A stretch of 64,000 nt of DNA, taken from positions 124,001 to 188,000 of the IMG/VR virus record IMGVR_UViG_3300023174_000038, one strand, 5' to 3'. The notes under the pieces are model-generated. The model made no database searches. It worked only from the letters and a program-made list of their open reading frames with translations, and had not been told where the DNA came from. The position numbers and the translations under genes are program-made. This document shows positions 22,801 through 49,872 of the stretch, one piece after another; position 1 is the first letter of the stretch, and the number at the start of each line of letters is the position of its first letter.

Positions 22801-25800
22801 GTGTCGGTTCACTAACTGGGTTAACTGTAAGCAATGCAACAGGTGTAGTTGATTTTACAACTACAGCTAATGTCACATTAGGAGCAGTTGCTAACGTACA
22901 TATCAGTGGTGGCACTAATGGATATGTATTAAGTACAAATGGATCAGGCGCATTAAGTTGGGTAGCTCAATCGGGTGGAGGTGGTGGTAGTAATATCAGT
23001 AATGGAAACAGTAATGTTAACATACCGGCTGCTAATGGAAACGTTAACATAAGTGCAGTTGGTAATGCTAATGTAGTAGTAATTACTGGTACTGGAGCAA
23101 ATATCACCGGTACAGCAAATATTACCGGTAATCTAAGTGCAGGTAATATCATTGCTGGTTCAGGTTCAGGTGGTAACATATCTAATGCAAATGTTATTTC
23201 AGCTAATACATTCACCGCTACTGGTAATATAACTAGTGGTAATGCTAATTTGGGTAATAGTGTAACTGCTAATTACTTCACTGGTAACTTCTATGGTACA
23301 GCTAACTTAGCTACATACGCAACTACTGCTAATAGTGTTGCCGGTGCTAATGTATCTGGACAAGTAGCTAATAGTTTAATAGCCGGCACAGTATATACAA
23401 ATGCACAACCAAACATAACATCAGTTGGTACATTAACCGGTATAACAAGTACCGGAACAGTTAATTTAACTGGTGCAAGTAACGTATCATTGGGACCTGT
23501 AGGTAATGTAAAAATTACAGGTGGTACTAATGGGCAATATCTATCTACTGATGGATCAGGAAATCTATCTTGGTCTACTGTAGCAAGCGGTTCATCAAGT
23601 AATATCAGTAATGGAAACAGTAATGTAAATATACCAGCCGCTAATGGCAATATTAATCTAACTGCAGTTGGTAATACAACTATGGTTATTACTGGCACAG
23701 GGGTTAATATAGCAGGGACATTAAACACTTCAGGTAATATTACATCAGGTAATGCTAATTTAGGTAACAGTGTAACTGCTAATTACTTCACTGGTAACTT
23801 CTATGGAACAGCTAACTTAGCAACTTATGCAACAACAGCTAATAGTGTAGCTGGTGGTAATGTCTCCGGACAAGTAGCTAACGCATTAGTCTCAGGTACT
23901 GTCTATACAAATGATCAACCAAATATCACTAGTGTTGGATCATTAACTGGTTTAACTGTAAGCAACGCCTCAGGTGTAGTTAATTTCACTACTACTGCAA
24001 ATGTAACACTAGGTGCAGTTACTAACGTACATATCAGTGGTGGCACTAATGGTTATGTATTAAGTACAGATGGATCAGGAACATTAAGTTGGGTAGCCCA
24101 ATCAGGTGGAGGTGGAGGCGGTAGTAATATCAGTAATGGAAACAGTAATGTAAACATACCAGCCGCTAATGGAAACGTTAACATATCAGCAGTTGGTAAT
24201 GCTAATGTAGTAGTAATTACTGGTACCGGGGCAAACATCACTGGTACAGCAAATATTACCGGTAATCTAAGTGCAGGTAATATCATTGCTGGTTCAGGTT
24301 CAGGTGGTAATATATCTAATGCAAACGTTATCTCAGCTAATACATTTACTGCATCTGGTAATATCACATCCGGTAATGCTAACTTGGGTAATAGTGCAAC
24401 TGCTAATTATTTTACTGGTAACTTTTATGGAACAGCTAACTTAGCAACTTATGCCACTACAGCTAATAGTGTTGCAGGAGCTAATGTATCTGGACAAGTA
24501 GCTAATGCATTGATATCAGGCACCGTATATACAAATGCACAACCCAATATCACATCAGTTGGTACACTAAGTAGTTTAGCAGTAACAGCTAATATCACAT
24601 CCGGTAATGCTAACTTGGGTAATAGTGCAGTAGCTAATTATTTTACTGGTAACTTTTATGGAACAGCTAACTTAGCAACTTATGCCACTACAGCTAATAG
24701 TGTTGCAGGTGCTAATGTATCTGGACAAGTAGCTAATAGTTTAATAGCCGGCACAGTATATACAAATGCACAACCTAATATCACTAGCGTAGGTAGCTTA
24801 ACTGGTCTAACTGTAAGCAACGCAACCGGTGTAGTTAATTTCACTACTACTGCAAATGTAACATTAGGTGCAGTTGGAAATCTACATATTTCTGGTGGTA
24901 CAAGTGCATATGTGTTAAGCACTGATGGTGCTGGTAATTTAAGTTGGGTAGCTCAAACAGGAGGTGGAGGCGGCAGTAATATCAGTAATGGAAACAGTAA
25001 TGTAAACATACCGTCTGCTAATGGAAACATTAATTTAACCGCAGTTGGCAATACAACTATGGTAATTACTGGTACTGGTGCAAACATAGCCGGTACAGCA
25101 AACATAACTGGTAATTTAAGTGCAGGAAATATCATTGCTGGTTCAGGATCAGGTGGTAATATATCTAATGCAAATGTTATCTCAGCTAACACATTTACTG
25201 CATCCGGCAACATAACTGCAGGTAATTTATCTATAACTGGTCTATCTAATTTAGGTGCAGTAGGTAATGTTGTCATTACAGGCGGAACCAATGGTTATGT
25301 GTTAAGTACAAATGGCTCAGGTGGATTAAGTTGGATTGCATCTGGTGGCGGTGGAGCCAATATTAGTAACGGCACAAGTAATATTAATATTGCGGCATCA
25401 GGTGGTAACATCACAATGGGTGTTGGTGGAACAGCAAATGTAGTAGTTGTTAGTACTACTGGCATTTCAGCTGCCATACAACCTAGAGTTGTAACTATTG
25501 CAGACGGAACATCAATTAGTATAAATGCTGATACTACTGATATGGCTATTCAAACAAATACACAAGCGGCCGGTACATTAACTATTAATGCACCATCAGG
25601 GACCTTATATCAAGGTCAAAAAATTATGTTAAGATTGCAATCTACTAATGTACAAACGTTCAGTTGGAATGCAGTGTTTAATAGTTCAACAGATTTAAAT
25701 TTACCTACAACATCATCCGGAAGTAGTAAATATGATTATATAGGATTTATATATAATTCAACTCAATCAAAATGGAATATAATTGCCAAAAACTTTGGCT

Positions 25801-25805
25801 TCTAA
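10833..25805 (+). CDS. Giant (4990 aa) repeat fibre/virion protein
   Basis: Single 15-kb ORF with about 20 copies of the W-containing G(Q)Y(V)LxT(D/N)GxGxLxW junction, built from the same modules as 1..4284; distinct globular C-terminal domain (QPRVVTIADG...KWNIIAKNFGF). Confidence 0.85.
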   Translation: MAITKLQPFNLDTTANYTFANITATNANLGNAATANYFIGSGNNLSNIQGANVTGAVSSATTSGTVTTAAQPNITSVGTLSGVISTGNVNLTSASNVALGPVANVHITGGTTGQYLQTDGSGNLSWSTVSSGAASNISNGNSNVNIPSANGNINLTAVGNTTMVITGTGVNVAGTLNVTGNTTVGNLVTSGSGGTLSNINVVSANTFTASGNITSGNANLGNSVTANYFTGNFYGTANLATYATTANSVAGGNVSGQVANALISGTVYTNAQPNITSVGTLSSLAVTANITSGNANLGNNVTANYFTGNGSLLTGITTSGLSNGNSNVNIPAANGNVNISAVGNANILVVTGTGVNVAGTLNVTGNATVGNIVTSGSGGNVSNVNVISANTFIASGNITAGNVVTSGSGGNISNANVISANTFTASGNITSANANLGNAVIANFFIGSGNNLSNIQAANVSGQVSNSLISGTVYTNAQPNITSVGSLTGLTVSNATGVVNFTTTANVTLGAVANLHISGGTSGQYLSTDGSGTLSWATVSSGASSNISNGNSNVNIPSANGNVNISAVGNANILVVTGTGVNVAGTLNATGNASLGNLVTTGSGGNISNANVVSANTFIASGNITAGNVVTSGSGGNISNANVISANTFTASGNITSGNANLGNSAVANYFTGNLYGTANLATYATTANAVAGGNVSGQVANALISGTVYTNAQPNITSVGTLSSLAVTANITSGNANLGNLVTANYFTGNGSLLTGITVSAGNSIVNGNSNVSIPAANGNVNISAVGNANIVVVTGTGANISGTLNISGNTTVSNLISSGSGGNISNANVVSANTFTASGNITAGNITTGAGSGGNITGANVISANTFTASGNITGANANLGNSVTANYFIGNFYGTANSATTAGTVTTAAQPNITSVGTLTGITSTGTVNLTSASNVSLGPVGNVKITGGTTGQYLSTDGSGNLSWSTVSSGSSSNISNGNSNVNIPSANGNINLTAVGNTTMVVTGTGVNVAGTLNVTGNATIGNITTGAGSGGNITGANVISANTFTASGNITGGNANLGNNVSANYFTGNLYGTANLATYATTANSVAGANVSGQVANSLISGTVYTNAQPNITSVGTLSSLAVTANITSGNANLGNNVTANYFTGNGSLLTGITVSAGNTIVNGNSNVLVSANGNVTTSVAGNANILIVTGTGVNVAGTLNVTGNATVGNIVTSGSGGNVSNVNVISANTFIASGNLTAGNINTTGSGGNIGNANVISANTFTASGNITAGNANLGNSAVANYFTGNFYGTANLATYATTANSVAGGNVSGQVANALISGTVYTNAQPNITSVGSLTGLTVSNASGVVNFITTSNVSLGAVGNVKITGGTTGQYLSTDGSGNLSWSTVSSGSTSNISNGNSNVNIPAANGNVNISAVGNANILVVTGTGVNVAGTLNVTGNATVGNIVTSGSGGNVSNVNVISANTFIASGNLTAGNINTTGSGGNIGNANVISANTFTASGNITSANANLGNSAVANYFTGNFYGTANLATYATTANSVAGANVSGQVANALISGTVYTNAQPNITSVGTLTGITSTGTANLTGASNVALGPVANVHITGGTSGQYLSTDGSGTLSWSTVSSGAASNISNGNSNVNIPAANGNVNISAVGNANILVVTGTGVNVAGTLNTTGNTTVGNLFSSGSGGNISNVNVISANTFTASGNITAGNVVTSGSGGNISNANVISANTFTASGNITSSNANLGNAATANFFIGSGNNLSNIQAANISGQVANSLIAGTVYTNAQPNITSVGSLTGLTVSNATGVVNLTTTANVTLGAVANLHISGGTSGQYLSTDGSGTLSWSTVSSGSTSNISNGNSNVNIPAANGNVNISSAGNANILIVTGTGVNVAGTLNTTGNTTVGNLFSSGSGGNISNVNVISANTFTASGNITAGNVVTSGSGGNISNANVISANTFSASGNITSGNANLGNSAIANYFTGNFYGTANLATYATTANAVAGANVSGQVANALVAGTVYTNAQPNITSVGSLTGLTVSNATGVVNLTTTANVTLGAVANLHISGGTSGQYLSTDGSGTLTWSTVSAGAASNISNGNSNVNIPAANGNVNISSAGNANIVVVTGTGANITGTLNVTGNATVGNIVTSGSGGNVSNVNVISANTFIASGNLTAGNISTTGSGGNIGNANVISANTFTASGNITSANANLGNSVVANYFTGNFYGTSNLATYATTANAVAGGNVSGQVANALVAGTVYTNAQPNITSVGSLTGLTVSNATGVVNLTTTANVTLGAVANLHISGGTSGQYLSTDGSGTLTWSTVSAGAASNIANGNSNVNIPAANGNVNISAVGNANVLVVTGTGVNVAGTLNVSGNTTVSNLISSGAGGNISNANVISANTFSATGNITVGNLVTSGSGGNITGGNVISANTLTASGNITAANANLGNSVVANYFTGNFYGTANTATTAGTVTTAAQPNITSVGSLTGLTVSNATGVVNLTTTANVTLGAVGNLHISGGTSGQYLQTDGSGTLTWATVSSGSTSNISNGNSNVNIPTANGNVNISAVGNANILVVTGTGVNVTGTLNTTGNTTVGNLFSSGSGGNISNVNVISANTFTASGNITSANANLGNSAVANYFTGNFYGTANLATYATTANAVAGGNVSGQVANALVSGTVYTNAQPNITSVGSLTGLTVSNATGVVNFTTTANVTLGAVANLHIAGGTNGQYLSTDGSGTLTWSTVSSGSTSNISNGNSNVNIPAANGNVNISAVGNANILVVTGTGVNVAGTLNVSGNTTVSNLISSGTGGNISNANVISANTFSATGNITVGNLVTSGSGGNITGGNVVSANTLIASGNITAANANLGNSVVANYFTGNFYGTANSATTASTVTTAAQPNITSVGTLSGVTSTGTVNLTGASNVSLGPVGNVKITGGTNGQYLQTDGSGTLTWATVSSGSSSNISNGNSNVNIPSANGNINLTAVGNTTMVITGTGVNVAGTLNTSGNTTVGNLFSSGSGGNISNVNVISANTFTASGNITSGNANLGNSVVANYFTGNFYGTANLATYATTANAVAGGNVSGQVANALIAGTVYTNAQPNITSVGSLTGLTVSNATGVVNFTTTANVTLGAVANLHIAGGTNGQYLSTDGSGTLTWSTVSSGSSSNVSNGNSNVNIPAANGNVNISAVGNANIVVVTGTGVNVAGTLNVSGNTTVANLATTGTGGNISNVNVISANTFTASGNITAGNANLGNAVIANFFIGSGANLTSLTGANVSGQVANSLIAGTVYTNAQPNITSVGTLTGITSTGTVNLTGASNVSLGPVGNVKITGGTNGQYLSTDGSGNLSWSTVAGGSSSNISNGNSNVNIPAANGNVNISAVGNANILVVTGTGVNVAGTLNVSGNTTVANLATTGTGGNISNVNVVSANTFTASGNITGGNLVTSGGNITGGNVVSANTLIASGNITSGNANLGNLVTANFFSGNGSLLTGITVSAGNSIVNGNSNVVVFANGNVTTSVAGNANILIVTGTGVNVSGTLNVTGNTTVGNLVTSGSGGTLSNINVVSANTFTASGNITGANANLGNSVIANYFTGNFYGTANSATTAGTVTTAAQPNITSVGTLTGVTSTGTVNLTGASNVSLGPVANVHITGGTNGQYLSTDGSGTLSWSTVSSGAASNIANGNSNVNIPSANGNVNISAVGNANVVVVTGTGANIAGTLNATGNIIAGGGTGGSITGANSISANYFIGTLYGTANLATYATTANSVAGGNVSGQVANALVSGTVYTNAQPNITSVGSLTGLTVSNATGIVNFTTTANVTLGAVANLHIAGGTNGQYLSTDGSGNLSWSTVSSGSSSNVSNGNSNVNIPTANGNINLTAVGNTTMVVTGTGVNVAGTLNVTGNTTVGNLVTSGSGGTLSNINVVSANTFTASGNITSGNANLGNSVTANYFIGSGNNLSNIQAANVSGQVANALVSGTVYTNAQPNITSVGSLTGLTVSNATGVVDFTTTANVTLGAVANVHISGGTNGYVLSTNGSGALSWVAQSGGGGGSNISNGNSNVNIPAANGNVNISAVGNANVVVITGTGANITGTANITGNLSAGNIIAGSGSGGNISNANVISANTFTATGNITSGNANLGNSVTANYFTGNFYGTANLATYATTANSVAGANVSGQVANSLIAGTVYTNAQPNITSVGTLTGITSTGTVNLTGASNVSLGPVGNVKITGGTNGQYLSTDGSGNLSWSTVASGSSSNISNGNSNVNIPAANGNINLTAVGNTTMVITGTGVNIAGTLNTSGNITSGNANLGNSVTANYFTGNFYGTANLATYATTANSVAGGNVSGQVANALVSGTVYTNDQPNITSVGSLTGLTVSNASGVVNFTTTANVTLGAVTNVHISGGTNGYVLSTDGSGTLSWVAQSGGGGGGSNISNGNSNVNIPAANGNVNISAVGNANVVVITGTGANITGTANITGNLSAGNIIAGSGSGGNISNANVISANTFTASGNITSGNANLGNSATANYFTGNFYGTANLATYATTANSVAGANVSGQVANALISGTVYTNAQPNITSVGTLSSLAVTANITSGNANLGNSAVANYFTGNFYGTANLATYATTANSVAGANVSGQVANSLIAGTVYTNAQPNITSVGSLTGLTVSNATGVVNFTTTANVTLGAVGNLHISGGTSAYVLSTDGAGNLSWVAQTGGGGGSNISNGNSNVNIPSANGNINLTAVGNTTMVITGTGANIAGTANITGNLSAGNIIAGSGSGGNISNANVISANTFTASGNITAGNLSITGLSNLGAVGNVVITGGTNGYVLSTNGSGGLSWIASGGGGANISNGTSNINIAASGGNITMGVGGTANVVVVSTTGISAAIQPRVVTIADGTSISINADTTDMAIQTNTQAAGTLTINAPSGTLYQGQKIMLRLQSTNVQTFSWNAVFNSSTDLNLPTTSSGSSKYDYIGFIYNSTQSKWNIIAKNFGF
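11334..11512 (+). repeat. 179-nt exact direct repeat (second copy 22503..22681)
   Basis: Base-by-base comparison by eye within the giant gene. Confidence 0.75.
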
Positions 25806-37583: not shown

Positions 37584-38537
37584 ATGGCGATTGAGATAGG
37601 ACCAGGTTGGACGATAGGTGGTGGAATAACAGTTTCCAGTCCACCTTCTGCTCCTACAGTAGCAACAGCAGGCTGGTTTGTAGGTGGTACAGGTGGTGGC
37701 GCCGGCATTACCACTGTAAATAGAGTAACATTTGCAAATGACACAGCAACAGCAAGTGTTCGAGGTCCACTAAGTGTAGCCTTAAATGGGGGAGCAGGCA
37801 CCGGTAATACGACTTATGGTTGGTTTGGTGGCAGTTCCCTTAGTTCAGTGTATCAATCAACGGTCCAACGAATCACATATGCAACTGATTCAGCAACTGC
37901 AAGTGTGCGTGGTCCATTAAGTACAGCTAGAGGATATTTAGCCGCAACCGGTAACACAACTGATGGTTGGTTTGCTGATGGATTTGGTAGCATATCAATA
38001 GTAGACCGTATTACATATGCATCTGATACAGCAACTGCAAGTGTGCGCGGCCCCTTAAACTTGGGGGTATATGCCTTAGCCGCTACCGGCGATAGCACTA
38101 ATGGTTGGTTTGGCGGCGGAAGTGGAACTAGTGCAATACAACGTATCACCTATGCAACAGATACAGCCACTGGAACTATACGAGGGGCATTAAGCGGTAC
38201 AATAAGAGGTTTGGCGGCATCAACTGATAGCACTACATATGGCTGGTTTGGCGGAGGATACCAAACTATTGCACCTGTTTGGGCATCATTAGTTCAACGT
38301 ATTACTTATGCAACTGATACAGCCGCAGTAAGTGTTCGTGGTCCATTAAGTGCAGGAAGATTTTATTTAGCGGCATGCGGTAATACAACTGATGGTTGGT
38401 TTGGTTCAGGATACACACCTGCAGCAGTGTCATTAATAGATAGAATTACCTATGCAACAGATACAGCAACAGCCAGTGTGCGTGGTCCGTTAAGTTTAAG
38501 CACCTACTATCTCTCAGCGGCAGCAGGGACACAATAA
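37584..38537 (+). CDS. Kelch-like beta-propeller virion protein, paralogue 3
   Basis: Six GWFGG/ATDTATASVRGPL repeats. Confidence 0.65.
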   Translation: MAIEIGPGWTIGGGITVSSPPSAPTVATAGWFVGGTGGGAGITTVNRVTFANDTATASVRGPLSVALNGGAGTGNTTYGWFGGSSLSSVYQSTVQRITYATDSATASVRGPLSTARGYLAATGNTTDGWFADGFGSISIVDRITYASDTATASVRGPLNLGVYALAATGDSTNGWFGGGSGTSAIQRITYATDTATGTIRGALSGTIRGLAASTDSTTYGWFGGGYQTIAPVWASLVQRITYATDTAAVSVRGPLSAGRFYLAACGNTTDGWFGSGYTPAAVSLIDRITYATDTATASVRGPLSLSTYYLSAAAGTQ

Positions 38538-38558
38538 TAGAAAGAATAATATATGTCA
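38531..38558 (+). repeat. 28-nt exact gene-junction repeat (second copy 40451..40478; partial copy 33564..33580)
   Basis: ACAATAATAGAAAGAATAATATATGTCA spans the stop and start of Kelch-like genes. Confidence 0.85.
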
Positions 38559-39494
38559 GTAACATTTAGTGGTGGAATAACATTTACAGGTGGAGGGTTT
38601 AGTTTCACTGCCGCACCTCCGGTTGGTGCTACAGCTGGTTGGTTTGGTGGTGGTATACCAACGTATAGCACAGTACAACGTATGACATTTGCAACAGATA
38701 CTAGTGCTACTAGTATACGAGGCCCACTTAGTTCCGGCAGATACGGTCTATCGGGTGCCGGTACTCTCACAAATGGTTGGTTTGGCGGCGGCGCCACACC
38801 CGCATTATTATCAACAGTAGACCGAGTAACATATGCAACTGACACAGCAACTGCTAGTGTACGTGGTCCATTAACTGTTGCAAGAATGCAACTAGGAGCA
38901 TCAACTGATAGTACTACTTACGGTTGGTTTGGTGCGGGATATCTTGGATATCCGACTACTCTATCTACAGTAGACCGAATAACATATGCCACTGATACAG
39001 CAACAGCAATTAGTCGAGGGCCGGTACATCAGGCACTTGGGGTAGCGGCTACGGGTACAACTGCATATGGTTGGTTTGGTGGAGGTTATAAATACCCTAC
39101 TGGAAGCATGTCAACCATAAGCCGTATTGATTATTCAAGTGATGCATCAACTGCTAGTGTGCGCGGCCCATTAAGTGTGGCAAGGTTCCTGACCGGGGCT
39201 ACAGGTAATGATACTAATGGCTGGTTTGCTGGTGGGCAAGGTACCGTTGTAGATAGAATTACATATGCAACAGATACTGCAACAGCTAGTGTGCGTGGAC
39301 CATTAAATAGTCCGACACGTGAAGGTATAGCTGGTGTTGGTAATACTACAAACGGTTGGTTTGCCGGTGGCTTTAATACTAGTACTATAAACCGTATTAC
39401 ATATGCAACTGATACTGCGACGGCAAGCCTAACCGGTACTTTAAGTGAATACTTTCAAATTACAAAAGTCGGCGGCACCTCCGGTCAACAATAA
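38553..39494 (+). CDS. Kelch-like beta-propeller virion protein, paralogue 4
   Basis: Six GWFGG/ATDTATASVRGPL repeats. Confidence 0.65.
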   Translation: MSVTFSGGITFTGGGFSFTAAPPVGATAGWFGGGIPTYSTVQRMTFATDTSATSIRGPLSSGRYGLSGAGTLTNGWFGGGATPALLSTVDRVTYATDTATASVRGPLTVARMQLGASTDSTTYGWFGAGYLGYPTTLSTVDRITYATDTATAISRGPVHQALGVAATGTTAYGWFGGGYKYPTGSMSTISRIDYSSDASTASVRGPLSVARFLTGATGNDTNGWFAGGQGTVVDRITYATDTATASVRGPLNSPTREGIAGVGNTTNGWFAGGFNTSTINRITYATDTATASLTGTLSEYFQITKVGGTSGQQ

Positions 39495-39512
39495 CATAAA
39501 GGTTTAAAAAGA

Positions 39513-40457
39513 ATGAGTATAACAATAACTGGCGGATTTACAATGGCAGGCGGTGGATTTACACTGGTAGCTGCACCTCCATCTGATCCTACTGCTAGTT
39601 GGGTTGCCGGCGGAGTAGCTAGTGGAGTTGATATATCTACTGTGCAACGTATCACCTATGCAACAGATACAGCTACTGCAACTATACGTGGTTCATTAAA
39701 TTTAGCAAGAGATAGATTTGCGGCAACAGGTAATACAACTGATGGTTGGTTTGGCGGCGGAGCTTACCCTGCAAATTCTACAATACAACGAATAACATAC
39801 GCAACAGATACCGCAACAGCATCAGTGCGTGGCCCCTTAAGTTCAGCTAGATATAATTTGGGAGCAAGCGGTAATACAACTAATGGTTGGTTTGGCGGCG
39901 GTACTGATTACCCCGGAGTTTCTACAGTAGACCGTGTCACTTACTCAACAGATACAATAACCGCAAGTATACGTGGTCCATTAAGTTTGGCCCGCATTAC
40001 CCCGGCTGCAGCCGGTAATACAACTGATGGTTGGTTTGGTGGAGGAGCAACTGGAGCAACAGTGGTGTCAACAGTAGATCGCATTACATACGCTACAGAT
40101 ACAGCAACAGCAAGTGTACGTGGTCCACTAAGTTTAGCCCGCAAACAGGCTGCAGCCGCAGGTAATACAACGTACGGATGGTATGCTGGTGGCTATGCCG
40201 GCGGCTCGGTTGGTGGACTAGTGGATCGTATAACATATGCAACAGATACCGCAACCGCATCGGTACGTGGGCCGGTATATGATTCTTATCAAATAGCAGC
40301 ATCTGGAAATTCAACGTACGGATGGTTTGCTGGCGGTAGTGGTGACCTATCAACAGTACAACGTATCACTTATTCAAATGATACTGTTGCGGCAACTCCG
40401 CGTGGTCCATTAAGTGTAGGCGCCACAGGACAAGCGGCTGCATCAGGCGTACAATAA
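39513..40457 (+). CDS. Kelch-like beta-propeller virion protein, paralogue 5
   Basis: Six GWFGG/ATDTATASVRGPL repeats. Confidence 0.65.
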   Translation: MSITITGGFTMAGGGFTLVAAPPSDPTASWVAGGVASGVDISTVQRITYATDTATATIRGSLNLARDRFAATGNTTDGWFGGGAYPANSTIQRITYATDTATASVRGPLSSARYNLGASGNTTNGWFGGGTDYPGVSTVDRVTYSTDTITASIRGPLSLARITPAAAGNTTDGWFGGGATGATVVSTVDRITYATDTATASVRGPLSLARKQAAAAGNTTYGWYAGGYAGGSVGGLVDRITYATDTATASVRGPVYDSYQIAASGNSTYGWFAGGSGDLSTVQRITYSNDTVAATPRGPLSVGATGQAAASGVQ

Positions 40458-40472
40458 TAGAAAGAATAATAT

Positions 40473-41414
40473 ATGTCAATAACAATAACAACGGGTGGAA
40501 TAACAATGACTGGTGGAGGTGTAAGCTTTAGTGCCGCACCACCCTCCACACCAACAGCCAGTTGGGTAGCCGGCGGAGGAAATATATTATCAACGGTAGA
40601 TCGTATTACATATGCTACTGATACTGCTACTGCAAGTGTGCGTGGCCCTCTTAGTTGGGCAACTAACAAACAGGCAGCTACTGGTAATTTGACTTATGGT
40701 TGGTGGGCCGGCGGATTTGATGGTGTTGCTCCTACTGATTTTGCAAGTACAGTACAACGAATTACATATGCCACAGATACTGCTGCCTCAAGTATTCGCG
40801 GTCCAATAAATTCAGAAAAAACTATGTTGGCTGCTGCAGGAACCACAGATTATGGATGGTTTGCCGGTGGAGCTTTGTATGTACAAACAGAACAATCAAC
40901 AGTAGATCGTATAACATATGCAACTGATACAGCAACTGCATCATTACGTGGTACAATAAGTTTAGCTAGATACTATTTGGGCGGAACATCAGATGGTAGT
41001 ACGTATGGATGGTTTGGTGGTGGTTATGCACCTTATAGAAGTAGGGTGGATCGTATAACATATGCAACAGATACAGCAACTGCTAGTGTACGTGGTCCAT
41101 TAAATATATCTATAATAATACCGGCAGCAACAGGTAATACAACTAATGGTTGGTGGGGAGGCGGATATGCTTCCGGTGCTTCAACAGCAGTATATCGTGT
41201 AACTTATGCAACCGATACAAATACAGCAAGTGTTCGTGGACCATTAAGTCAATCTGTGGGTACTGCATCAGGAAACTTGTCTTATGGTTGGTTTATGGGT
41301 GCTATTAACGTAGATAGAATTGATTATTCAAATGATACTGCTACTGCAAGTTTGCGTGGACAACTAGCAACAAATAGATCTACTTATGGTGCATCAGCTT
41401 CGGGTGTACAATAA
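40473..41414 (+). CDS. Kelch-like beta-propeller virion protein, paralogue 6
   Basis: Six GWFGG/ATDTATASVRGPL repeats. Confidence 0.65.
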   Translation: MSITITTGGITMTGGGVSFSAAPPSTPTASWVAGGGNILSTVDRITYATDTATASVRGPLSWATNKQAATGNLTYGWWAGGFDGVAPTDFASTVQRITYATDTAASSIRGPINSEKTMLAAAGTTDYGWFAGGALYVQTEQSTVDRITYATDTATASLRGTISLARYYLGGTSDGSTYGWFGGGYAPYRSRVDRITYATDTATASVRGPLNISIIIPAATGNTTNGWWGGGYASGASTAVYRVTYATDTNTASVRGPLSQSVGTASGNLSYGWFMGAINVDRIDYSNDTATASLRGQLATNRSTYGASASGVQ

Positions 41415-41438
41415 AATATACGGGTAAGCTATCTCTAC

Positions 41439-41446
41439 TATAAATA
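41439..41446 (+). promoter_or_regulatory. T4-type late promoter
   Basis: Intergenic TATAAATA upstream of the kinase/nucleotidyltransferase gene. Confidence 0.65.
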
Positions 41447-41468
41447 TTTTTATATCAGGAGATAAAAC

Positions 41469-42260
41469 ATGACACAACGTATTCTTATTATGGGCTTGCC
41501 CGGCGCAGGCAAAACTTATTTGGCACAACACTTACTTGGGCATCTACAAACGGCTAATAAACGAGTAGCTTGGCTTAACGCAGACGATGTCCGTAAAAAA
41601 TATAACGACTGGGACTTCAGTAAAGAAGGTCGCATTCGTCAAAGTCTACGTATGCGTGAACTAGCAGATAACATGACTGACACTGACTACGTTATATGCG
41701 ATTTTGTTGCACCATTGGTTGAAATGCGTAATAACTTTAAAGCTGATTGGACTATCTGGGTTGATACTATCAGTGAAGGTAGATACGAAGATACTAATAA
41801 AGCATTCGTCCCACCAGAAGTATATGACTTCCGTATCACAGAACAAAATAGTGAAAAATGGAGTGAGTTCATCTTTGCACATATATACGATAATAGACGT
41901 AGACCAACATTCAATTGGCAAAAAGAAACGGTACAGATGCTAGGAAGGTGGCAACCATGGCATGATGGTCATCGTGCATTGTTTGAACGTGCTATTGCTA
42001 AAACAGGACAAGTAATTATTCAAATACGTGACTGTCAAGGCTGGCAAGGTAGTAACCCATTTGAAATAGAAAAGGTCAAATCATTCATTAAACGTGATTT
42101 GGACATGTTATATCAAGGTCAATATGAAATTCAAGTTGTACCAAATATCACTAACATTACTTATGGGCGTGATGTTGGTTATAAAATTGAACAAGAAACA
42201 TTTGACGAAAAAATTCATGCTATAAGTGCCACAAGTATACGTAAAATGTTAGGATTATAA
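41469..42260 (+). CDS. Adenylylsulfate kinase (CysC)-like domain fused to an HxGH nucleotidyltransferase domain
   Basis: GLPGAGKT P-loop, LNADDVR, DFSKEGR; C-terminal GRWQPWHDGH and ISATSIR motifs. Confidence 0.75.
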   Translation: MTQRILIMGLPGAGKTYLAQHLLGHLQTANKRVAWLNADDVRKKYNDWDFSKEGRIRQSLRMRELADNMTDTDYVICDFVAPLVEMRNNFKADWTIWVDTISEGRYEDTNKAFVPPEVYDFRITEQNSEKWSEFIFAHIYDNRRRPTFNWQKETVQMLGRWQPWHDGHRALFERAIAKTGQVIIQIRDCQGWQGSNPFEIEKVKSFIKRDLDMLYQGQYEIQVVPNITNITYGRDVGYKIEQETFDEKIHAISATSIRKMLGL

Positions 42261-42294
42261 ACCAGTCTTTTTAAATTAGATAAGTAGTTATCTA

Positions 42295-42732
42295 ATGAAT
42301 ACATTTCAATCGTCTTACGACAATAGATTACAATCTTGGTATAATTTACGCAATCAAATCAAATCACTTGATTTAGCTCAACAATGTGTGGAAATTGACA
42401 AGTGGTGGCAACAAGCCCCACTTGTCAACCACTATCTACACCCAATTGATTTACCCACATGGCCCGGGCCTTGGGAGCTTTTGGTAGAAAACACCTACTG
42501 TACGCTTGCAAGAGGACTAGGAATGTGCTATACTCTACTATTAATGAATATTACTGATATAGAGTTTGTGTTAGCTACTGATAGTCAAGGAAATGACACA
42601 TCATTAGTCTTGGTAGACAACGCAAAATATCTGCTTAATTACTGGCCAAACACCGTGATAAGTAATAATCTACAAGATTTTAAAATAGTAAGCAAATTAG
42701 ATATAACAACAATTAATAATAAGATAGGGTAA
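42295..42732 (+). CDS. Hypothetical protein, weak transglutaminase-like (BTLCP) resemblance
   Basis: WPGPWELL...YC...YTL pattern; no clear catalytic His. Confidence 0.4.
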   Translation: MNTFQSSYDNRLQSWYNLRNQIKSLDLAQQCVEIDKWWQQAPLVNHYLHPIDLPTWPGPWELLVENTYCTLARGLGMCYTLLLMNITDIEFVLATDSQGNDTSLVLVDNAKYLLNYWPNTVISNNLQDFKIVSKLDITTINNKIG

Positions 42733-42734
42733 AA

Positions 42735-44207
42735 ATGAAAATATACGTCACCAAAAGAGATGGGACAAAAGAGCCATTAATGTTAGAAAAATGGCAAGCG
42801 CAAGTAGCAAAAATATGTGTGGGGATACCTGATGTTAGCCCTTCAATGGTAGAGATAAAATCACAACTACACTTCTATGATGGAATTTCAACACAAGAAA
42901 TTGATGGAATTACATTACGTGCAGTTGTTGATTTGATTGACGTAGAAAACAATCCAGATGTAGGACATACAAACTATCAATATGTAGCAGGTAAACAACG
43001 TCTATCAATGTTACGTAAAGATGTATATGGTAACTACGAGCCTCCCCGTCTGTATGATATCGTAGTAACTAATGTAGCTACAGGATTATATACACCAGAA
43101 TTACTAGAATGGTATAGTGAAGAAGATTGGAACAAGATGGATGACATGCTTGACCATTCTAAGGACGAGCAATATAGTTATGCCGCCATTGAACAATTGA
43201 TTGAAAAATATCTAGTAAAGAATAGATCAACAAAACAAACATATGAAACACCTCAAGTTAGATACATGGTTGCAGCCGCTACAGTTTTTCATAAAGAAGA
43301 ACCTAATAGTGCCCGTATGCGTTATATTAAAGAATATTATAATGCAGCCAGTGATGGGTTGTTTACTCTTGCTACTCCTGTGCTTGCAGGCTTGGGTACT
43401 CCAACAAAGCAATTTTCATCCTGTGTTCTTATTCGCTCCGACGACGATTTGGATAGTATTTTTGCTAGCGGAGAAATGATGGCAAAATATGCTAGTAAAC
43501 GTGCTGGCATTGGTTTAGAAATAGGAAGACTACGACCATTAGGCAGTCCTATTCGTGGTGGTGAGATTATGCATACAGGCATGATCCCATTCTTAAAGAA
43601 ATGGTTTGGTGACTTAAGAAGTTGCAGTCAAGGAGGTATTCGTAATGCAAGTGCTACAGTATTTTATCCCATTTGGCATCATCAGTTTGATGACCTTATC
43701 GTACTTAAAAACAATCAAGGAACAGACGAAACTAGAGTCAGGTTCATGGACTATGGGGTTGTTCTTAGTGCATTCTTCTGGAGACGATTTAAAAACAAAG
43801 AACAAATAACATTCTTTGATCCCAATGAAGTGCCTGACTTATATGAAGCATTTTACAAAAACACAGAACTATTTGAAGAACTATATGTAAAATACGAAAA
43901 ACGTAAAGACTTACGAAAGAAAACAATGTCGGCCGAAGAAGTATTCAAGTCGGGCATTCTTAAAGAACGAACAGATACAGGACGTATCTACCTAGTGTTC
44001 GTTGATAATGTTATGAATCAAGGACCATTTGATCCTGAATATCATACAATTTACCAGTCAAATTTATGTTGCGAGATCCTTTTGCCCACCAAGAGTTTCA
44101 AGAGAATGAATCCGGAACGCAAGTTAATTCGTGTCAAGAAATCTAATGTTGACGAGTTTATGAAAACGAAATCAAACGACATTGTTAACATTAGGAAGAT
44201 AAAATAG
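42735..44207 (+). CDS. nrdA: Ribonucleotide reductase class Ia alpha subunit, N-terminal fragment
   Basis: ATP-cone start (VTKRDG), QFSSCVL, CSQGGIR, ER..TGRIY and QSNLCCEI active-site loop; ends 33 aa after PTKSFKR. Confidence 0.95.
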   Translation: MKIYVTKRDGTKEPLMLEKWQAQVAKICVGIPDVSPSMVEIKSQLHFYDGISTQEIDGITLRAVVDLIDVENNPDVGHTNYQYVAGKQRLSMLRKDVYGNYEPPRLYDIVVTNVATGLYTPELLEWYSEEDWNKMDDMLDHSKDEQYSYAAIEQLIEKYLVKNRSTKQTYETPQVRYMVAAATVFHKEEPNSARMRYIKEYYNAASDGLFTLATPVLAGLGTPTKQFSSCVLIRSDDDLDSIFASGEMMAKYASKRAGIGLEIGRLRPLGSPIRGGEIMHTGMIPFLKKWFGDLRSCSQGGIRNASATVFYPIWHHQFDDLIVLKNNQGTDETRVRFMDYGVVLSAFFWRRFKNKEQITFFDPNEVPDLYEAFYKNTELFEELYVKYEKRKDLRKKTMSAEEVFKSGILKERTDTGRIYLVFVDNVMNQGPFDPEYHTIYQSNLCCEILLPTKSFKRMNPERKLIRVKKSNVDEFMKTKSNDIVNIRKIK

Positions 44208-44215
44208 TAGGTAAT

Positions 44216-44251
44216 AGTATTTCAAGTATAAATAAGAGTATAGGAAATACT
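44216..44251 (+). promoter_or_regulatory. Late promoter within an RBS-sequestering hairpin upstream of the GIY-YIG gene
   Basis: AGTATTTC (44216-44223) is complementary to GAAATACT (44244-44251), which overlaps the AGGA RBS; TATAAATA (44227-44234) lies between the arms. Confidence 0.7.
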
Positions 44252-44254
44252 TTT

Positions 44255-45079
44255 ATGAAGAAATACATTATCTATTGTCATACACTAAATGGTAAGAAAT
44301 ACATAGGTTATACAAGTAAAACGATGGAAGAACGATTGCAGGATCATATTGGAGAAGCATTAGAAGGAAGTGATAGACATTTCCATCGTGCTATCAAAAA
44401 GTATGGGTCTGAAAATATTGTCTCAGAAATCTTAGCAGAAGTATACAATAAAGACGAAGCCAAAAAGTTAGAAGAAACTTTCGTTGAAAAGTTAGATACT
44501 TTCAAAAATGGCTATAATATGACTCGCGGCGGTGATGGTGGCAACACTCTTGAAAAATATACAGACGAAAAGATGAAAGAGCATCGTAAATTGAAATCTT
44601 ATAACGCTGTTGGAATGAACAATGGCAACGCAAAGCCTAATATTACCAAAGAAATGATAGTAGATGCTGTAGTTCAATTTTGTATTGAGAACAATAAACA
44701 AGGCGATTATTTGTTAAGAAAAGAGATTGAATCGATCCTCAAAGAGCAATTGGGCGTTAGTCAAATGATATTAAAGAATAGAATTGATAATGGGCTAAAA
44801 CAGTTAATTGATGAAGTAAACAAGAAGTTATCTACCCCTGTAAAATATGATCCATACTATAGAGGTGAGGATCATAAGAAGCGGTTAGCATCGGCAACAT
44901 CAAAGTTGCGCTGGGCGACAAATGGTATTGATAATGTAAAACTACCGGCAGATGAATTGGATAAATTTCTCAAAGAAAACCCAACATATAAACAAGGTAG
45001 AAAATTGAAGAATAGTGAAGATAGAAAAGAAATTAAATCAAAGTTGGGTTATAGTAGAATAGGATTAGGGAATGTATGA
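44255..45079 (+). CDS. GIY-YIG homing endonuclease (free-standing, inside split nrdA)
   Basis: YIIY...KKYIGYT...R...H...E...GYNMTRGG GIY-YIG motifs. Confidence 0.85.
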   Translation: MKKYIIYCHTLNGKKYIGYTSKTMEERLQDHIGEALEGSDRHFHRAIKKYGSENIVSEILAEVYNKDEAKKLEETFVEKLDTFKNGYNMTRGGDGGNTLEKYTDEKMKEHRKLKSYNAVGMNNGNAKPNITKEMIVDAVVQFCIENNKQGDYLLRKEIESILKEQLGVSQMILKNRIDNGLKQLIDEVNKKLSTPVKYDPYYRGEDHKKRLASATSKLRWATNGIDNVKLPADELDKFLKENPTYKQGRKLKNSEDRKEIKSKLGYSRIGLGNV

Positions 45080-45372
45080 ACAAACGAATCAAACAGTTAG
45101 CAACAGAAGTTGGTATCAGTGTTGAATACTTAAACAATACCAAACAGTGGCCATTGATAGAGGCATTAGCCGAAAGAATTGTAGAAGAATGTATCGGATG
45201 TTGTGAACAAGTTATTAGTGATCCTGTTCCTGAATCAGTTGATACTTTTGAACAAGGTGGAATTCATTGTATAGATGAGATTCGACAACACTTTGGTATT
45301 GGTATGAGCACAGAAGATAAAAAGATCCTAATCAAAGAACTGTTAGGAGTAAAAAATGAACGATCGGATTAA
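45076..45372 (+). CDS. Hypothetical phage protein (MNxRIKQLA family)
   Basis: ATGA-coupled; similar to the next ORF (RIKQLA...AExIxxEC). Confidence 0.6.
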   Translation: MNKRIKQLATEVGISVEYLNNTKQWPLIEALAERIVEECIGCCEQVISDPVPESVDTFEQGGIHCIDEIRQHFGIGMSTEDKKILIKELLGVKNERSD

Positions 45373-45574
45373 ACAACTCGCTGAACAGGCTAGACAAGAA
45401 TTTTTACAATTGCCAACAGGATACACAGCAGAACAAGTTGGAATGTATCCCCAGTTGATGGAACGGTTCGCCGAACTAATCATCACAGAATGTTTGGATA
45501 TTGCCAACGACACACGATATGATGGCAAGGTAGTTGCCAACCGTATCAAGTTTGTTTTTGAAGTTGAAGAATGA
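45356..45574 (+). CDS. Hypothetical phage protein (MNxRIKQLA family)
   Basis: AGGAG RBS; MNDRIKQLAEQA...ERFAELIITEC. Confidence 0.6.
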   Translation: MNDRIKQLAEQARQEFLQLPTGYTAEQVGMYPQLMERFAELIITECLDIANDTRYDGKVVANRIKFVFEVEE

Positions 45575-45843
45575 TTGATTATTACCAAGCACTAAGAGAA
45601 ATGCACCAGGGCAATGTAGTTAAATATGTTGGCACGGTAAATGGAAATGTAATGAGCGACAAGGGTGCTAGTTTCTGTATGTGCCGTGGTTGTATCTTTT
45701 TATTCGACAACGGTGTAATCAAATGGAACAAGTTGGGATATATGGTTTACGACCCAGACTATCGTTATGAGCTAACTGGAGAGACAGTTGATCCAAGGGC
45801 ATGGAAACCAGAAGAGACAAAAAAGCAAAAGGATAAAGAATGA
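45571..45843 (+). CDS. Hypothetical protein
   Basis: ATGA-coupled at both ends; CxCxxC motif. Confidence 0.55.
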   Translation: MIDYYQALREMHQGNVVKYVGTVNGNVMSDKGASFCMCRGCIFLFDNGVIKWNKLGYMVYDPDYRYELTGETVDPRAWKPEETKKQKDKE

Positions 45844-46856
45844 ACAAGTTATACGAAGAAATAGAATATCTACCCGAAGAGTTAGATGACGAATATGAAT
45901 ACTATGAAATTGACGAAGCGGAGGGACGAATCGCTTTATGTACGCTGGGATCTATTAACTGGGGTGCGTTCCGTAATCCTGAAGACATGCGCCGTGCTTG
46001 TCGCATATTGCATCGTAGCCTCAATAACATTCTTGACTATCAAGATTTTCTATCCATTCAATCTAAACTATCAAACGATGAAATCAGACCTCTTGGAATT
46101 GGAATCACTAATCTTGCCTACTGGCACGCCAAGCGAAGTCTTAAGTACGGAGAGAAAGACTCCTTGGCTGAAGTCAAGACGTGGATGGAACACTTATCCT
46201 TCTACTTAACTGAAGCAAGTGTAGAACTAGCACAAGAACGCGGTCGTTGTGAACATAGCGATAAAACACGTTATGGTCAAGGCATCTTCCCCTGGGAACT
46301 ACGTGCTAAAGGTGTAAACGAATTAACTAACTTTGATCCAGAACTTAATTGGGAAGGACTACGTGCTATGATGCGTAGTCATGGTGTCCGTAATGCTACG
46401 CAAATGGCTGTTGCTCCTGTAGAATCAAGTAGTGTAGTTATTAATAGCACTAATGGTATTGAAATGCCAATGAGTTTGATAAGTGTTAAAGAAAGTAAAG
46501 CAGGAAGTTTTGTACAAGTTGTTCCAGAATATCATAAGTTGAAAAACAAATATCAATTGATGTGGGATCAAAAAGATTGTGATGGTTATCTAAAAACAGC
46601 GGCAGTGATTGCAGCCTATGTTGACCAAAGCATAAGTACTAATACGTTTTATAATCCAGCACATTTCCCTGAGCGTAAAGTCCCAACAACATTGATTGCT
46701 AAGAACTTAATGCAGGCACACTATTATGGTATCAAGACCTTCTATTATAGCTTGATTAACAAAGCAGGTAGTAAGAGCCAAGATGAAACTGTATTAGATT
46801 TACCAAGTGGCTTTAATGATATGGATGAAGAAGATTGCGAGGCTTGTAAATTATAA
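45840..46856 (+). CDS. nrdA: Ribonucleotide reductase class Ia alpha subunit, C-terminal fragment
   Basis: AAGGA RBS; EGRIALCTL resolving Cys, RPLGIG, APVESSS, NGIE, DQSIS, KTFYY tyrosine pair, C-terminal CEACKL. Confidence 0.95.
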   Translation: MNKLYEEIEYLPEELDDEYEYYEIDEAEGRIALCTLGSINWGAFRNPEDMRRACRILHRSLNNILDYQDFLSIQSKLSNDEIRPLGIGITNLAYWHAKRSLKYGEKDSLAEVKTWMEHLSFYLTEASVELAQERGRCEHSDKTRYGQGIFPWELRAKGVNELTNFDPELNWEGLRAMMRSHGVRNATQMAVAPVESSSVVINSTNGIEMPMSLISVKESKAGSFVQVVPEYHKLKNKYQLMWDQKDCDGYLKTAAVIAAYVDQSISTNTFYNPAHFPERKVPTTLIAKNLMQAHYYGIKTFYYSLINKAGSKSQDETVLDLPSGFNDMDEEDCEACKL

Positions 46857-47563
46857 TGAACTATCAAAAAATATATAATAATTTAATAGAGCGTTCAAAA
46901 AACCGATTAGTTGAAGGATATAGTGAAAAACATCACATTATCCCTCGCTGCCTAGGTGGAACAAATGAAAAAGAAAATATTACTCGGTTAACTGCGGAAG
47001 AACACTATTTGGCTCATCAACTTCTTGTTAAGATGTATCCTAACAATTTTAAACTAATTCGTGCAATGCATATGATGACAGTTAATAGTAATTATACTAT
47101 AAGAAACAATAAATCATTTGGTTGGATTCGCAGACAAAACGCCATTGCAATGTCGGTAAGTATGAAGGTATATCAAAAAGAAAACGGTCACCCAAGAGGT
47201 ATGGCAGGTAAAACTAATACAATAGCGTCTAACATTAAACGCTCGGGTAGTATGAAGGGTATACCGTGCCCAAGTCGCGGTGTAAGAGGGCCGAGAGGAT
47301 CACGGGCATCCCCGCTAAAAGTAGTATGTCGGTTAGATAATAGAAAAGAGTTAGATATGGCAAATTTTATGGCATACTGCAAGAGATTAGATAATCCTGC
47401 AAAAGCAATAGAACAAGATGCTAATCGTTCAAAAGCAACAAAAGGTATTCCAAAACCGCAAGAAAAAGTTAAATGTCCGCATTGTCTATTAATCGGCGGA
47501 GCAAATATTATGAAGCATCATCATTTTGATAATTGTAAAGAAAAGAAAGAAGAACATGTCTAA
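46856..47563 (+). CDS. HNH homing endonuclease (MobE-like) between nrdA and nrdB
   Basis: EKHHIIPRCLGG...N...LTAEEHYLAH; C-terminal CPHC...H...C finger; same position as T4 mobE. Confidence 0.85.
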   Translation: MNYQKIYNNLIERSKNRLVEGYSEKHHIIPRCLGGTNEKENITRLTAEEHYLAHQLLVKMYPNNFKLIRAMHMMTVNSNYTIRNNKSFGWIRRQNAIAMSVSMKVYQKENGHPRGMAGKTNTIASNIKRSGSMKGIPCPSRGVRGPRGSRASPLKVVCRLDNRKELDMANFMAYCKRLDNPAKAIEQDANRSKATKGIPKPQEKVKCPHCLLIGGANIMKHHHFDNCKEKKEEHV

Positions 47564-48656: not shown

Positions 48657-48667
48657 GGAGAACAAAA

Positions 48668-48898
48668 ATGAAAGCAGTTATTTGGTCAAAGTACCATTGT
48701 CCCTATTGTGACCAAGCAAAGGCATTATTGGGACAACTAGATATACCGTTTGAAGAAAAGAAAATCGGAGACGGGTATACAAAAGAAGAACTATTAGAAG
48801 CAATTCCATCAGCAAGAACAGTACCACAGATTATTATCAATGGTGAATTAATCGGTGGATTTAACGAACTTAAACAATTTTTAACAAAGGCAGCGTAG
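48668..48898 (+). CDS. Glutaredoxin
   Basis: CPYC, RTVPQI and IGGF motifs; AAGGAG RBS. Confidence 0.92.
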   Translation: MKAVIWSKYHCPYCDQAKALLGQLDIPFEEKKIGDGYTKEELLEAIPSARTVPQIIINGELIGGFNELKQFLTKAA

Positions 48899-49483: not shown

Positions 49484-49543
49484 GCTGTGATTCCTTTTCA
49501 ATCATAGAGTAGTTGGGAACTCCAATTCCGCGAACTACACTCT

Positions 49544-49551
49544 TATTTATA
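49544..49551 (-). promoter_or_regulatory. T4-type late promoter for the minus-strand endonuclease
   Basis: TATTTATA on + is TATAAATA on -, about 60 nt upstream of ATG 49483. Confidence 0.65.
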
Positions 49552-49565
49552 CAAAAAGGATAAAA

Positions 49566-49871: not shown

Positions 49872-49872
49872 A

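Follow-up and report, generated by a model that had tools for sequence, protein, structure and literature searches.

The large-subunit gene (nrdA) of a class Ia ribonucleotide reductase (RNR) is carried in two pieces, around a homing endonuclease cassette, by a freshwater (lake) jumbo phage. The pieces end in tails of opposite charge, and the basic tail is related to that of the one studied case of this kind, Aeromonas phage Aeh1. The window analysed is a stretch of 64,000 nucleotides from the IMG/VR record IMGVR_UViG_3300023174_000038 (positions 124,001 to 188,000). The split described in the initial annotation was confirmed. Its interpretation was only partly supported: a gene split through its active site without intron or intein, in parallel with Aeh1, is upheld, while an origin independent of Aeh1, inferred from the GIY-YIG nature of the invader, is not. 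The two tails, which are the functionally central feature, had been overlooked.

Features of the split nrdA locus (positions in the window).
Position	Strand	Feature	Remarks
42735..44207	+	nrdA-a, N-terminal piece of the class Ia RNR large subunit	490 aa; ATP-cone, all-alpha domain, first half of the barrel
44058..44105	+	5' co-conversion tract	last ~48 nt of native coding sequence; recoded synonymously relative to otherwise 92-98% identical intact relatives; matches the split allele L028
44106..44204	+	Basic C-terminal tail of nrdA-a	33 aa, 10 K/R against 4 D/E, pI 10.4; motif L-I-R-V-K-K-S-x-V-D-x-F shared with Aeh1-type tails
44211..44256	+	Predicted RNA hairpin over the endonuclease RBS and start codon	dG -11.7 kcal/mol, z -3.5; T4-late-promoter-like TATAAATA (44227-44234) in the loop; comparable hairpins in relatives and in Aeh1
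44255..45079	+	Free-standing GIY-YIG homing endonuclease gene	274 aa; 63-84% identical copies at the same place in L005, L036, L105, L119, L124 and L131
45076..45372	+	Small ORF, function unknown	98 aa; ATGA-coupled to the endonuclease gene; weak paralog of the next ORF; variable cargo
45356..45574	+	Small ORF, function unknown	72 aa; weak relatives in the gaps of L036, L115 and L130
45571..45843	+	Small ORF, function unknown	90 aa; stop overlaps the nrdA-b start (ATGA)
45840..45908	+	Acidic N-terminal head of nrdA-b	23 aa, 10 D/E against 1 K, pI 4.05; conserved in at least 81 of the 120 best protein clusters
45909..45959	+	3' co-conversion tract	first ~50 nt of resumed native coding sequence; diverged from otherwise near-identical intact relatives
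45840..46856	+	nrdA-b, C-terminal piece	338 aa; second half of the barrel
46856..47563	+	mobE-like HNH endonuclease gene between nrdA-b and nrdB (the T4 mobE position)	first ~100 aa 39-61% identical to the mobE of Aeh1, L100 and L102
47526..48656	+	nrdB, RNR small subunit	likely true start is the ATG at 47556, because relatives align from residue 8-11 of the listed ORF

To define the break, the two ORFs were searched against Pfam and aligned with intact NrdAs and with Aeh1, a comparison that had been proposed as a test of the split. Positions 1-222 of the barrel model PF02867 fall on the first piece and positions 222-522 on the second. The cut lies exactly between the thiyl-Cys strand (NLCCE) and the resolving-Cys strand (IALC). 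C230 (FSSC), N443, C445 and E447 are on the first piece, and C34 (IALC), Y302-Y303 and the C-terminal CxxC are on the second. These residues, which together with the domains identify a class Ia NrdA, are invariant or nearly so in the alignments of split relatives. In intact relatives (related loci are designated L with a number) the two homologous cores abut with no gap and no lost residue, for example at 5594|5595 in L016. The insertion therefore lies exactly after PTKSFKR (window position 44105), and native sequence resumes at 45909.

The 1.6-kb gap (44208-45839) is filled by the GIY-YIG ORF and three small ORFs joined by ATGA overlaps, and only 47 nt are non-coding. AAGGA lies about 8 nt upstream of the ATG of the second piece. 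The endonuclease has a GIY-YIG catalytic domain above the Pfam threshold (PF01541, 31.6 bits against a cut-off of 22.6) and a C-terminal DNA-binding region, and matches the homing endonuclease family phrog_314 at E 1e-26; DNA cleavage was not assayed. An Rfam scan of 43800-46300 at E up to 10 found no group I or group II intron, and Pfam found no intein or Hint domain on either piece.

The position of the cut and the charge of the extensions were compared with those of Aeh1. The cut lies in the same loop, between the equivalents of E. coli C439 and C462 (PMC3045599). The basic tail and acidic head have pI 10.38 and 4.05; the same calculation gives 9.92 and 4.05 for the Aeh1 tails, for which the published values are 10.4 and 3.8. 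This polarity has been shown to be essential in Aeh1, where deleting the tails lowers activity about 2000-fold (PMC3045599).

A profile built only from the basic tails of the window's family was then used to examine their relationship to Aeh1-type tails. It hits the tails of Aeh1 (12.8 bits), L100 (12.6), L102 (18.9) and L060 (16.8), a group that includes other mobE-split T4-like phages. Between 0 and 2 of 5000 shuffles reach these scores, and no non-NrdA hit reaches 9 bits among 8,215 background ORF fragments (925,000 residues). The ten tails align without gaps, with K12 and F18 invariant. For the acidic head, a shared D-[DE]-E-Y-x-x-hydrophobic-E run in register with the Cys was observed, but the similarity to Aeh1-type heads is not significant beyond composition (fixed-register shuffle p 0.08-0.4; profile score 0.2 bits), and homology of the heads is neither supported nor excluded by it. 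A further link comes from a sister allele (L107 type), which carries a GIY-YIG endonuclease whose C-terminal 130 aa are 38% identical (E 1e-24) to the DNA-binding half of the mobE-type HNH enzyme that sits in Aeh1-type splits. The evidence points to common ancestry of the tail-plus-endonuclease cassette with an exchange of nuclease domains.

The same tails recur in many freshwater phage contigs, with one of three GIY-YIG-type endonucleases between them or nothing at all. In L028, L060, L120 and L122, which lack an endonuclease, both tails are kept with only 7-50 nt between the ORFs, leaving no room for a ribozyme. Both tails are under purifying selection: pN/pS is 0.21 for the tail and 0.06 for the head, against 0.165 for the catalytic core.

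Close relatives of the window have an intact gene. Window DNA is 92-98% identical to intact L016, L017 and L019, except for 63-68% in the bins next to the insert; the difference is confined to about 50 nt on each side. In an independent metagenome (run X2) the cassette is present at 99% identity (19 differences over 43962-45943), while the neighbouring nrdA is about 85% identical. On a tree of the nrdA body, which may be blurred by recombination within nrdA, the split state needs 5 changes for 6 split rows, and at least 3 of these are forced by well-supported branches. The cassette thus moves between diverged nrdA genes.

Taken together, these results are best explained, with fairly good confidence, by an Aeh1-type genes-in-pieces RNR. 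In this view, a mobile cassette (basic-tail codons, homing endonuclease gene with variable cargo, acidic-head codons) was copied into the conserved loop of an intact nrdA by endonuclease-driven gene conversion, with about 50 nt of flanking coding sequence dragged along on each side. Nothing would be spliced. The two ORFs would be translated separately, and the two half-barrels would associate to rebuild the active site (C230/C445/E447 with C34). The oppositely charged tails would be needed to form the (a/b)2 large subunit that binds NrdB2, as shown experimentally for Aeh1. The tails are the stable, selected part, and the endonuclease between them is exchangeable (three GIY-YIG-type enzymes in this family, HNH mobE in the Aeh1 type) or can be lost. 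The endonuclease gene is probably kept silent early by the predicted hairpin, which has the RBS in its 3' arm; its function was not examined, and masking of translation is neither borne out nor ruled out by the prediction. The anatomy, the absence of a detectable ribozyme or intein, the homology of the basic tail, purifying selection, patchy distribution and the conversion tracts rest on the sequences analysed here, whereas assembly, activity and the role of the tails are extrapolated from the biochemistry of Aeh1, whose NrdA body is only about 37-42% identical; no biochemical or genetic data exist for this phage. Single-chain AlphaFold models gave low confidence for both tails (mean pLDDT 51.5 for the N-piece and about 43-53 for the head), and no docking geometry is known. 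Selection on both tails and the conserved catalytic residues lend indirect support to a functional enzyme.

Of the alternatives, a separate split of nrdA by a GIY-YIG endonuclease, with similar tails evolving by convergence under the constraints of the same loop and interface, survives best, although it is unlikely. In its favour, the nuclease family differs from that of Aeh1, the NrdA bodies are only ~40% identical, the head similarity is not significant and the junctions differ by 2-4 residues. Convergence of the tails under the same structural constraint cannot be fully excluded. Against it stand the positional motif shared by the basic tails at the same offset, with significant profile scores in four separate comparisons, the DNA-binding half that the L107-type enzyme shares with mobE-type enzymes, and the mobility of the cassette. 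In addition L060, which lies inside the window's own nrdA clade, has an Aeh1-like junction and tail.

Inactivation of nrdA, with the pieces as decaying remnants in a phage that relies on host RNR, is very unlikely. Activity data are lacking and the N-piece alone folds poorly in silico, but both pieces and both tails are under purifying selection, the catalytic residues are conserved, and the split form persists across clusters down to 78% identity and after loss of the endonuclease. nrdB and a glutaredoxin gene are kept downstream, and Aeh1 shows that such an enzyme is fully active.

Restoration of a continuous NrdA by an unrecognised ribozyme, a degenerate split intein or ribosomal bypassing is equally doubtful. 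RNR genes are classic intron and intein targets, a genuine split-intein allele with the expected terminal motifs exists 12 codons upstream (between L444 and C445) in the same clade, and Crona et al. raised a degenerate-intein origin for the tails. However, besides the negative Rfam and Pfam scans, the coupled ORFs filling the gap and the short spacers of endonuclease-less forms, the tail starts with M, L or I rather than Cys or Ser, and the head ends in YYE followed by I, with no HN followed by Cys, Ser or Thr. A spliced mRNA, named beforehand as an observation that would overturn the reading, was looked for in metatranscriptome contigs: contigs lie inside the gap and no joint skips it, although these are assembled contigs of libraries that may contain DNA and show presence only. 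In Aeh1 both tails are present on the mature, separate proteins. An assembly chimera, conceivable for a metagenomic contig, is practically excluded, as the window is 100% identical to a 348,701-bp IMG/VR contig over 41008-50510, the same arrangement occurs in independent samples from 2014 to 2025, independent freshwater runs contain 44-85% of the sampled words of this stretch, a 3160-nt contig from one of those runs, from another study, spans the whole cassette, and dozens of related loci have the same architecture.

The closest described system is the nrdA-a/mobE/nrdA-b arrangement of Aeh1 (Friedrich et al. 2007, as cited in PMC3045599; Crona et al. 2011, PMC3045599), which likewise has a free-standing homing endonuclease gene between the pieces, a hairpin over its RBS (predicted in the window) and nrdB downstream. 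Here the endonuclease is GIY-YIG and not HNH mobE, three extra small ORFs lie in the gap, and the genome is that of a ~349-kb freshwater jumbo phage and not of a T4-like Aeromonas phage. Aeh1 was described as unique, whereas the arrangement is widespread and polymorphic here. In fractured genes with split inteins (Dassa et al. 2009, PMC2677866), an essential DNA-metabolism gene, including nrdA, is also cut into two ORFs with a GIY-YIG or other endonuclease gene between them; the fragment ends carry opposite charges, a hairpin with a late-promoter motif lies upstream of the endonuclease gene, and forms without an endonuclease exist. True members of this class occur in the same phage clade (L029, L092), but the window lacks a Hint domain and splicing residues, its insertion point lies 12 residues downstream of the intein site, and its fragments must work non-covalently instead of being ligated. 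Intron-encoded endonucleases of phage nucleotide-metabolism genes (T4 td, nrdB, nrdD) similarly place a GIY-YIG or HNH enzyme inside an RNR-pathway gene and spread by homing with co-conversion of flanking exon sequence; in the window there is no ribozyme and the interruption is neutralised at the protein level. T4 mobE is a free-standing HNH endonuclease gene between nrdA and nrdB (PMC2790892); its counterpart in the window is not the element that splits nrdA.

A broader reading, about as likely as not, is that the paired tails and an exchangeable endonuclease gene form a distinct class of selfish element. Such an element would invade the active-site loop of an essential gene and carry its own protein-level antidote (non-covalent complementation tails) in place of an RNA or protein splicing activity. 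It would spread by homing between phages as distant as T4-like Aeromonas phages and freshwater jumbo phages, swap nuclease domains on a shared DNA-binding module, and leave a permanently split but functional gene when the endonuclease is lost.

The Aeh1 enzyme has been the only studied case of an essential enzyme cut through its active site by a mobile element and repaired without any splicing, and its tails had no database match in 2010 (PMC3045599). Natural sequence variation can now be used to ask whether the tails are a general, transferable antidote, how they dock, how homing endonucleases exchange nuclease domains while keeping a target, and whether gene fission can become fixed after the invader is gone. 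The tails could also be useful as small natural fragment-complementation tags. The arrangement is not a one-off: the same site and related tails occur in many environmental phage genomes, with at least three GIY-YIG-type endonucleases, HNH mobE or nothing between the tails, and conversion tracts show that the cassette is currently moving.

In the window, which carries myophage-type baseplate genes and comes from a freshwater sample, nrdA is encoded by two ORFs. The stretch 41008-50510 is 100% identical to an IMG/VR viral contig of 348,701 bp, whereas a near-identity DNA search of isolate phages found nothing. Comparison with intact phage NrdA and with Aeh1 had been named in the initial annotation as a test of the split. 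Alignment with the intact NrdAs of Xanthomonas phage BUDD (62% identity) and Salmonella phage SKML-39 confirmed the break, which lies between the NLCCE strand (N443, C445, E447) and the IALC strand, where C34 of the second piece is located. Fifty-one complete metagenomic relatives were compared, of which 45 have an intact gene. In those, the two homologous cores abut with no gap at all, and the insertion is therefore exact. The 1,632-nt gap contains a 47-nt spacer, a GIY-YIG endonuclease gene and three small ORFs chained by ATGA overlaps, the last one overlapping the start of the second nrdA piece. That start also has its own AAGGA. The three small ORFs gave no PHROG, no Pfam hit above threshold and no isolate-phage match; they are absent from most sister cassettes and are treated as cargo. 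A mobE-like HNH gene and nrdB follow the second piece. The features are listed in the table.

Features of the nrdA region, of other parts of the window and of two related loci
Sequence	Coordinates	Strand	Feature	Observations
window	10833..25805	+	Single ORF, 4,990 aa	Next to baseplate-wedge-like genes; probably a giant virion or fibre protein
window	37584..41414	+	Four consecutive ORFs of 313-317 aa	The first hits phrog_19111 (unknown function); may be tandem paralogs
window	41469..42260	+	ORF, 263 aa	APS-kinase/KTI12-like P-loop kinase N-terminus with a weak cytidylyltransferase-like C-terminus (phrog_10255 'kinase'); conserved upstream of nrdA in relatives such as L105
window	42735..44207		First nrdA piece, 490 aa	ATP-cone, all-alpha domain and positions 1-222 of the Pfam barrel model
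window	44105		End of native sequence before the insertion	Insertion follows ...PTKSFKR
window	44106-44204		Non-native C-terminal extension (tail) of the first piece, 33 residues	10 K/R against 4 D/E, pI 10.4
window	44255..45079		GIY-YIG endonuclease gene	PF01541 above threshold, phrog_314
window	45840..46856		Second nrdA piece, 338 aa	Positions 222-522 of the same Pfam barrel model
window	45840-45908		Non-native N-terminal extension (head) of the second piece, 23 residues	10 D/E against 1 K, pI 4.05
window	45909		Native sequence resumes	
window	46856..47563	+	mobE-like HNH endonuclease gene between the second nrdA piece and nrdB, as mobE in T4	Nuclease half 39-61% identical to the mobE that splits nrdA in Aeh1-type phages; C-terminal half differs
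L060 (IMGVR_UViG_3300027777_001507)	1..3669		nrdA in three pieces	Split intein with a 369-aa ORF at ...RSC/SQGG; further on, a tail-type split with an Aeh1-like junction (PTVAMG...) and no endonuclease between the pieces
L009 (relative)	1152..2251		nrdB called as two ORFs (151 and 213 aa)	Either the small-subunit gene is split too, or there is a frameshift

The initial annotation missed the two extensions, a strongly basic tail on the first piece and a strongly acidic head on the second. This is the situation described for Aeromonas phage Aeh1, in which NrdA-a has a basic tail (pI 10.4) and NrdA-b an acidic tail (pI 3.8), both present on the mature proteins (PMC3045599). Deletion of the Aeh1 tails lowers activity about 2000-fold because the (a/b)2 dimer and the holoenzyme no longer form, and the Aeh1 split also lies between the equivalents of E. 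coli C439 and C462. To address the relationship of the tails, the Aeh1 sequence was compared directly. The basic tails share a run of the form L-x-[KR]-[VI]-[KR]-K-S-x-V-x-x-F at nearly the same offset from the NLC motif. A profile built only from five window-family tails scored Aeh1 at 12.8 bits, two further mobE-split T4-like metagenomic phages (L100 and L102) at 12.6 and 18.9 bits, and L060 at 16.8 bits. Between 0 and 2 of 5000 composition-preserving shuffles reached those scores, and among 8,215 six-frame ORF fragments from all the DNA retrieved, nothing except NrdA first pieces reached even 9 bits. Ten tails align without a gap. The acidic heads share a D-[DE]-E-Y-x-x-hydrophobic-E run in register with the catalytic Cys; against shuffles this is not significant beyond composition, and it is counted as suggestive only. 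L100 and L102-L104, all T4-like metagenomic contigs, are further Aeh1-type loci with nrdA-a, a mobE-like HNH gene and nrdA-b in T4-like gene order (gp32, frd, td, nrdA, nrdB, rnlA). The Aeh1 arrangement is therefore not unique even among T4-like phages.

The origin of the tails was also examined. A profile of ten tails searched against 1.84 billion representative proteins returned only NrdA fragments, one small chimera and one spurious repeat protein, and no outside origin was found. In one metagenomic protein of 79 aa (P0244), an unrelated small protein is fused to the last 25 residues of the L060-type basic tail, which may be a recombination product of the cassette elsewhere. The tail was also considered as a diverged duplicate of the downstream native strand. 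The tblastn hits in Marfa-like Klebsiella phages and in a Vibrio phage turned out to be alignments driven by the 26 native residues, running on weakly into the native sequence, and were rejected as evidence, although in several relatives the first 2-3 tail residues (L-D-P) look like retained native L-D-D. AlphaFold2 models of each piece alone left the tails at low confidence, with a weak helix at 469-476 and a disordered head, from which nothing can be concluded about docking; no complex of the two pieces was modelled. NrdA C-terminal pieces of about 306-309 aa that resemble gammaproteobacterial NrdA (P0154, P0161, P0177, P0204 and P0216, on contigs of 5.6-151 kb) start right at M-x-[DEH]-[IV]-[NH]-D-[EP]-x-G-E-I-A-L-C with no acidic head, and may be another kind of split, or an intron, at the same loop.

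The window nrdA is 92-98% identical at the DNA level to that of intact relatives (L016, L017 and L019), except in the last ~48 nt before the insert and the first ~50 nt after it, where identity drops to 63-68%. On the 5′ side all of these changes are synonymous, and this 5′ stretch matches the split allele L028. An independent 2025 freshwater run holds a 3160-nt contig whose middle part, corresponding to 43962-45943, differs from the window at 19 positions (99% identity). That stretch covers the cassette with all three small ORFs, while the nrdA on both sides of it is only about 85% identical. In a tree of the nrdA body built with the junction flanks removed, the split state needs 5 changes for 6 split rows. 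At least 3 of these are forced by well-supported branches, and the label is no more clustered than shuffled labels. An intact-allele relative (L023) comes from the same metagenome as the window. These results indicate a mobile cassette.

To study the content of the gap, 36 head-bearing loci were examined, comprising 29 stretches found with a head-motif DNA pattern and 7 retrieved earlier. Some are different stretches of one contig (for example L031 and L112), and 4 lack the tail end of the gap. The window-type GIY-YIG gene is present at 7 loci (63-100% identical) with different cargo ORFs, a second type of 254 aa, as in L107, at 13 loci (two of them cut by the contig end), and a third type of 243 aa, as in L031, at 7 loci. 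The gap holds only a small ORF at 2 loci and nothing at 4, and 3 loci are too short to tell (tail outside the locus and no endonuclease hit). The L107 type has a GIY-YIG catalytic domain (PF01541, 24 bits against a cut-off of 22.6), and its C-terminal 130 residues are 38% identical (E 1e-24) to the DNA-binding half of the mobE-type HNH enzyme of the Aeh1-type locus L100. This is a nuclease-domain swap on a shared targeting module, at the same site, between homologous tails, and is taken as independent support that the two groups of cassettes are related.

The 47-nt spacer is predicted to fold into a hairpin (dG -11.7 kcal/mol, z -3.5) whose 3′ arm covers the endonuclease RBS and whose loop carries TATAAATA. 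The function of this hairpin in the window is inferred. Comparable hairpins precede the endonuclease genes of relatives and of Aeh1, and the arrangement matches the published control of Aeh1 mobE and of fractured-gene endonucleases.

A length-restricted protein search, which excludes full-length NrdA, found 1,986 proteins at E up to 1e-10. Of the best 120 clusters, at least 81 carry the acidic head, at 78-96% identity over the whole piece. Across split loci, pN/pS is 0.21 for the tail and 0.06 for the head, against 0.165 for the catalytic core, and the catalytic residues are invariant. The split gene is therefore maintained and is not decaying.

No splicing element was found. An Rfam scan at E up to 10 gave no group I or II intron, and Pfam gave no intein. 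The extension on the first piece starts with Met (Leu or Ile in relatives) and not with Cys or Ser, and that on the second piece does not end in His-Asn followed by a nucleophile. The same phage clade also has a genuine split-intein ('fractured') nrdA allele (L010, L029, L091 and L092), inserted directly before the thiyl Cys, 12 codons upstream of the tail-type site; its 318-aa HNH-type endonuclease has a C-terminal region 28-32% like residues 143-249 of the window GIY-YIG protein. When the tail and head were compared with the IntN and IntC of this sister allele, only a short I-K-I-K-K-like strand pattern appeared, which is not enough, and the topology does not fit. A spliced mRNA had been specified in advance as an observation that would overturn the split reading. 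Contigs from metatranscriptome libraries lie inside the gap at 99-100% identity (44184-44374, 44730-44949 and 45058-45208) and no joint skips the gap, although this is weak evidence, because these are contigs and the libraries may contain DNA. The strongest argument comes from relatives that keep both extensions but have lost the endonuclease. In L028 the stop of the first piece and the ATG of the second are 7 nt apart, and in L060, L120 and L122 they are about 48-50 nt apart. A ribozyme cannot fit there.

Thus, the split of nrdA through its active site without intron or intein, as observed in the initial annotation, is confirmed. Its interpretation holds in part: the reading as an Aeh1-like composite active site is right, but the inference that a GIY-YIG invader points to an independent origin is not supported. 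While the anatomy of the locus rests on the sequence comparisons described here, assembly and activity of the two polypeptides of this phage were not assayed, and neither the docking of the tails nor their source was found. No report of tail-type split nrdA outside Aeh1 was found in the literature searched, which was incomplete. The tail-type split is already known from Aeh1, and one difference here is the GIY-YIG gene between the pieces in place of the HNH mobE. The evidence favours one family of tail-bearing cassettes that moves between phage nrdA genes and exchanges or loses its endonuclease.
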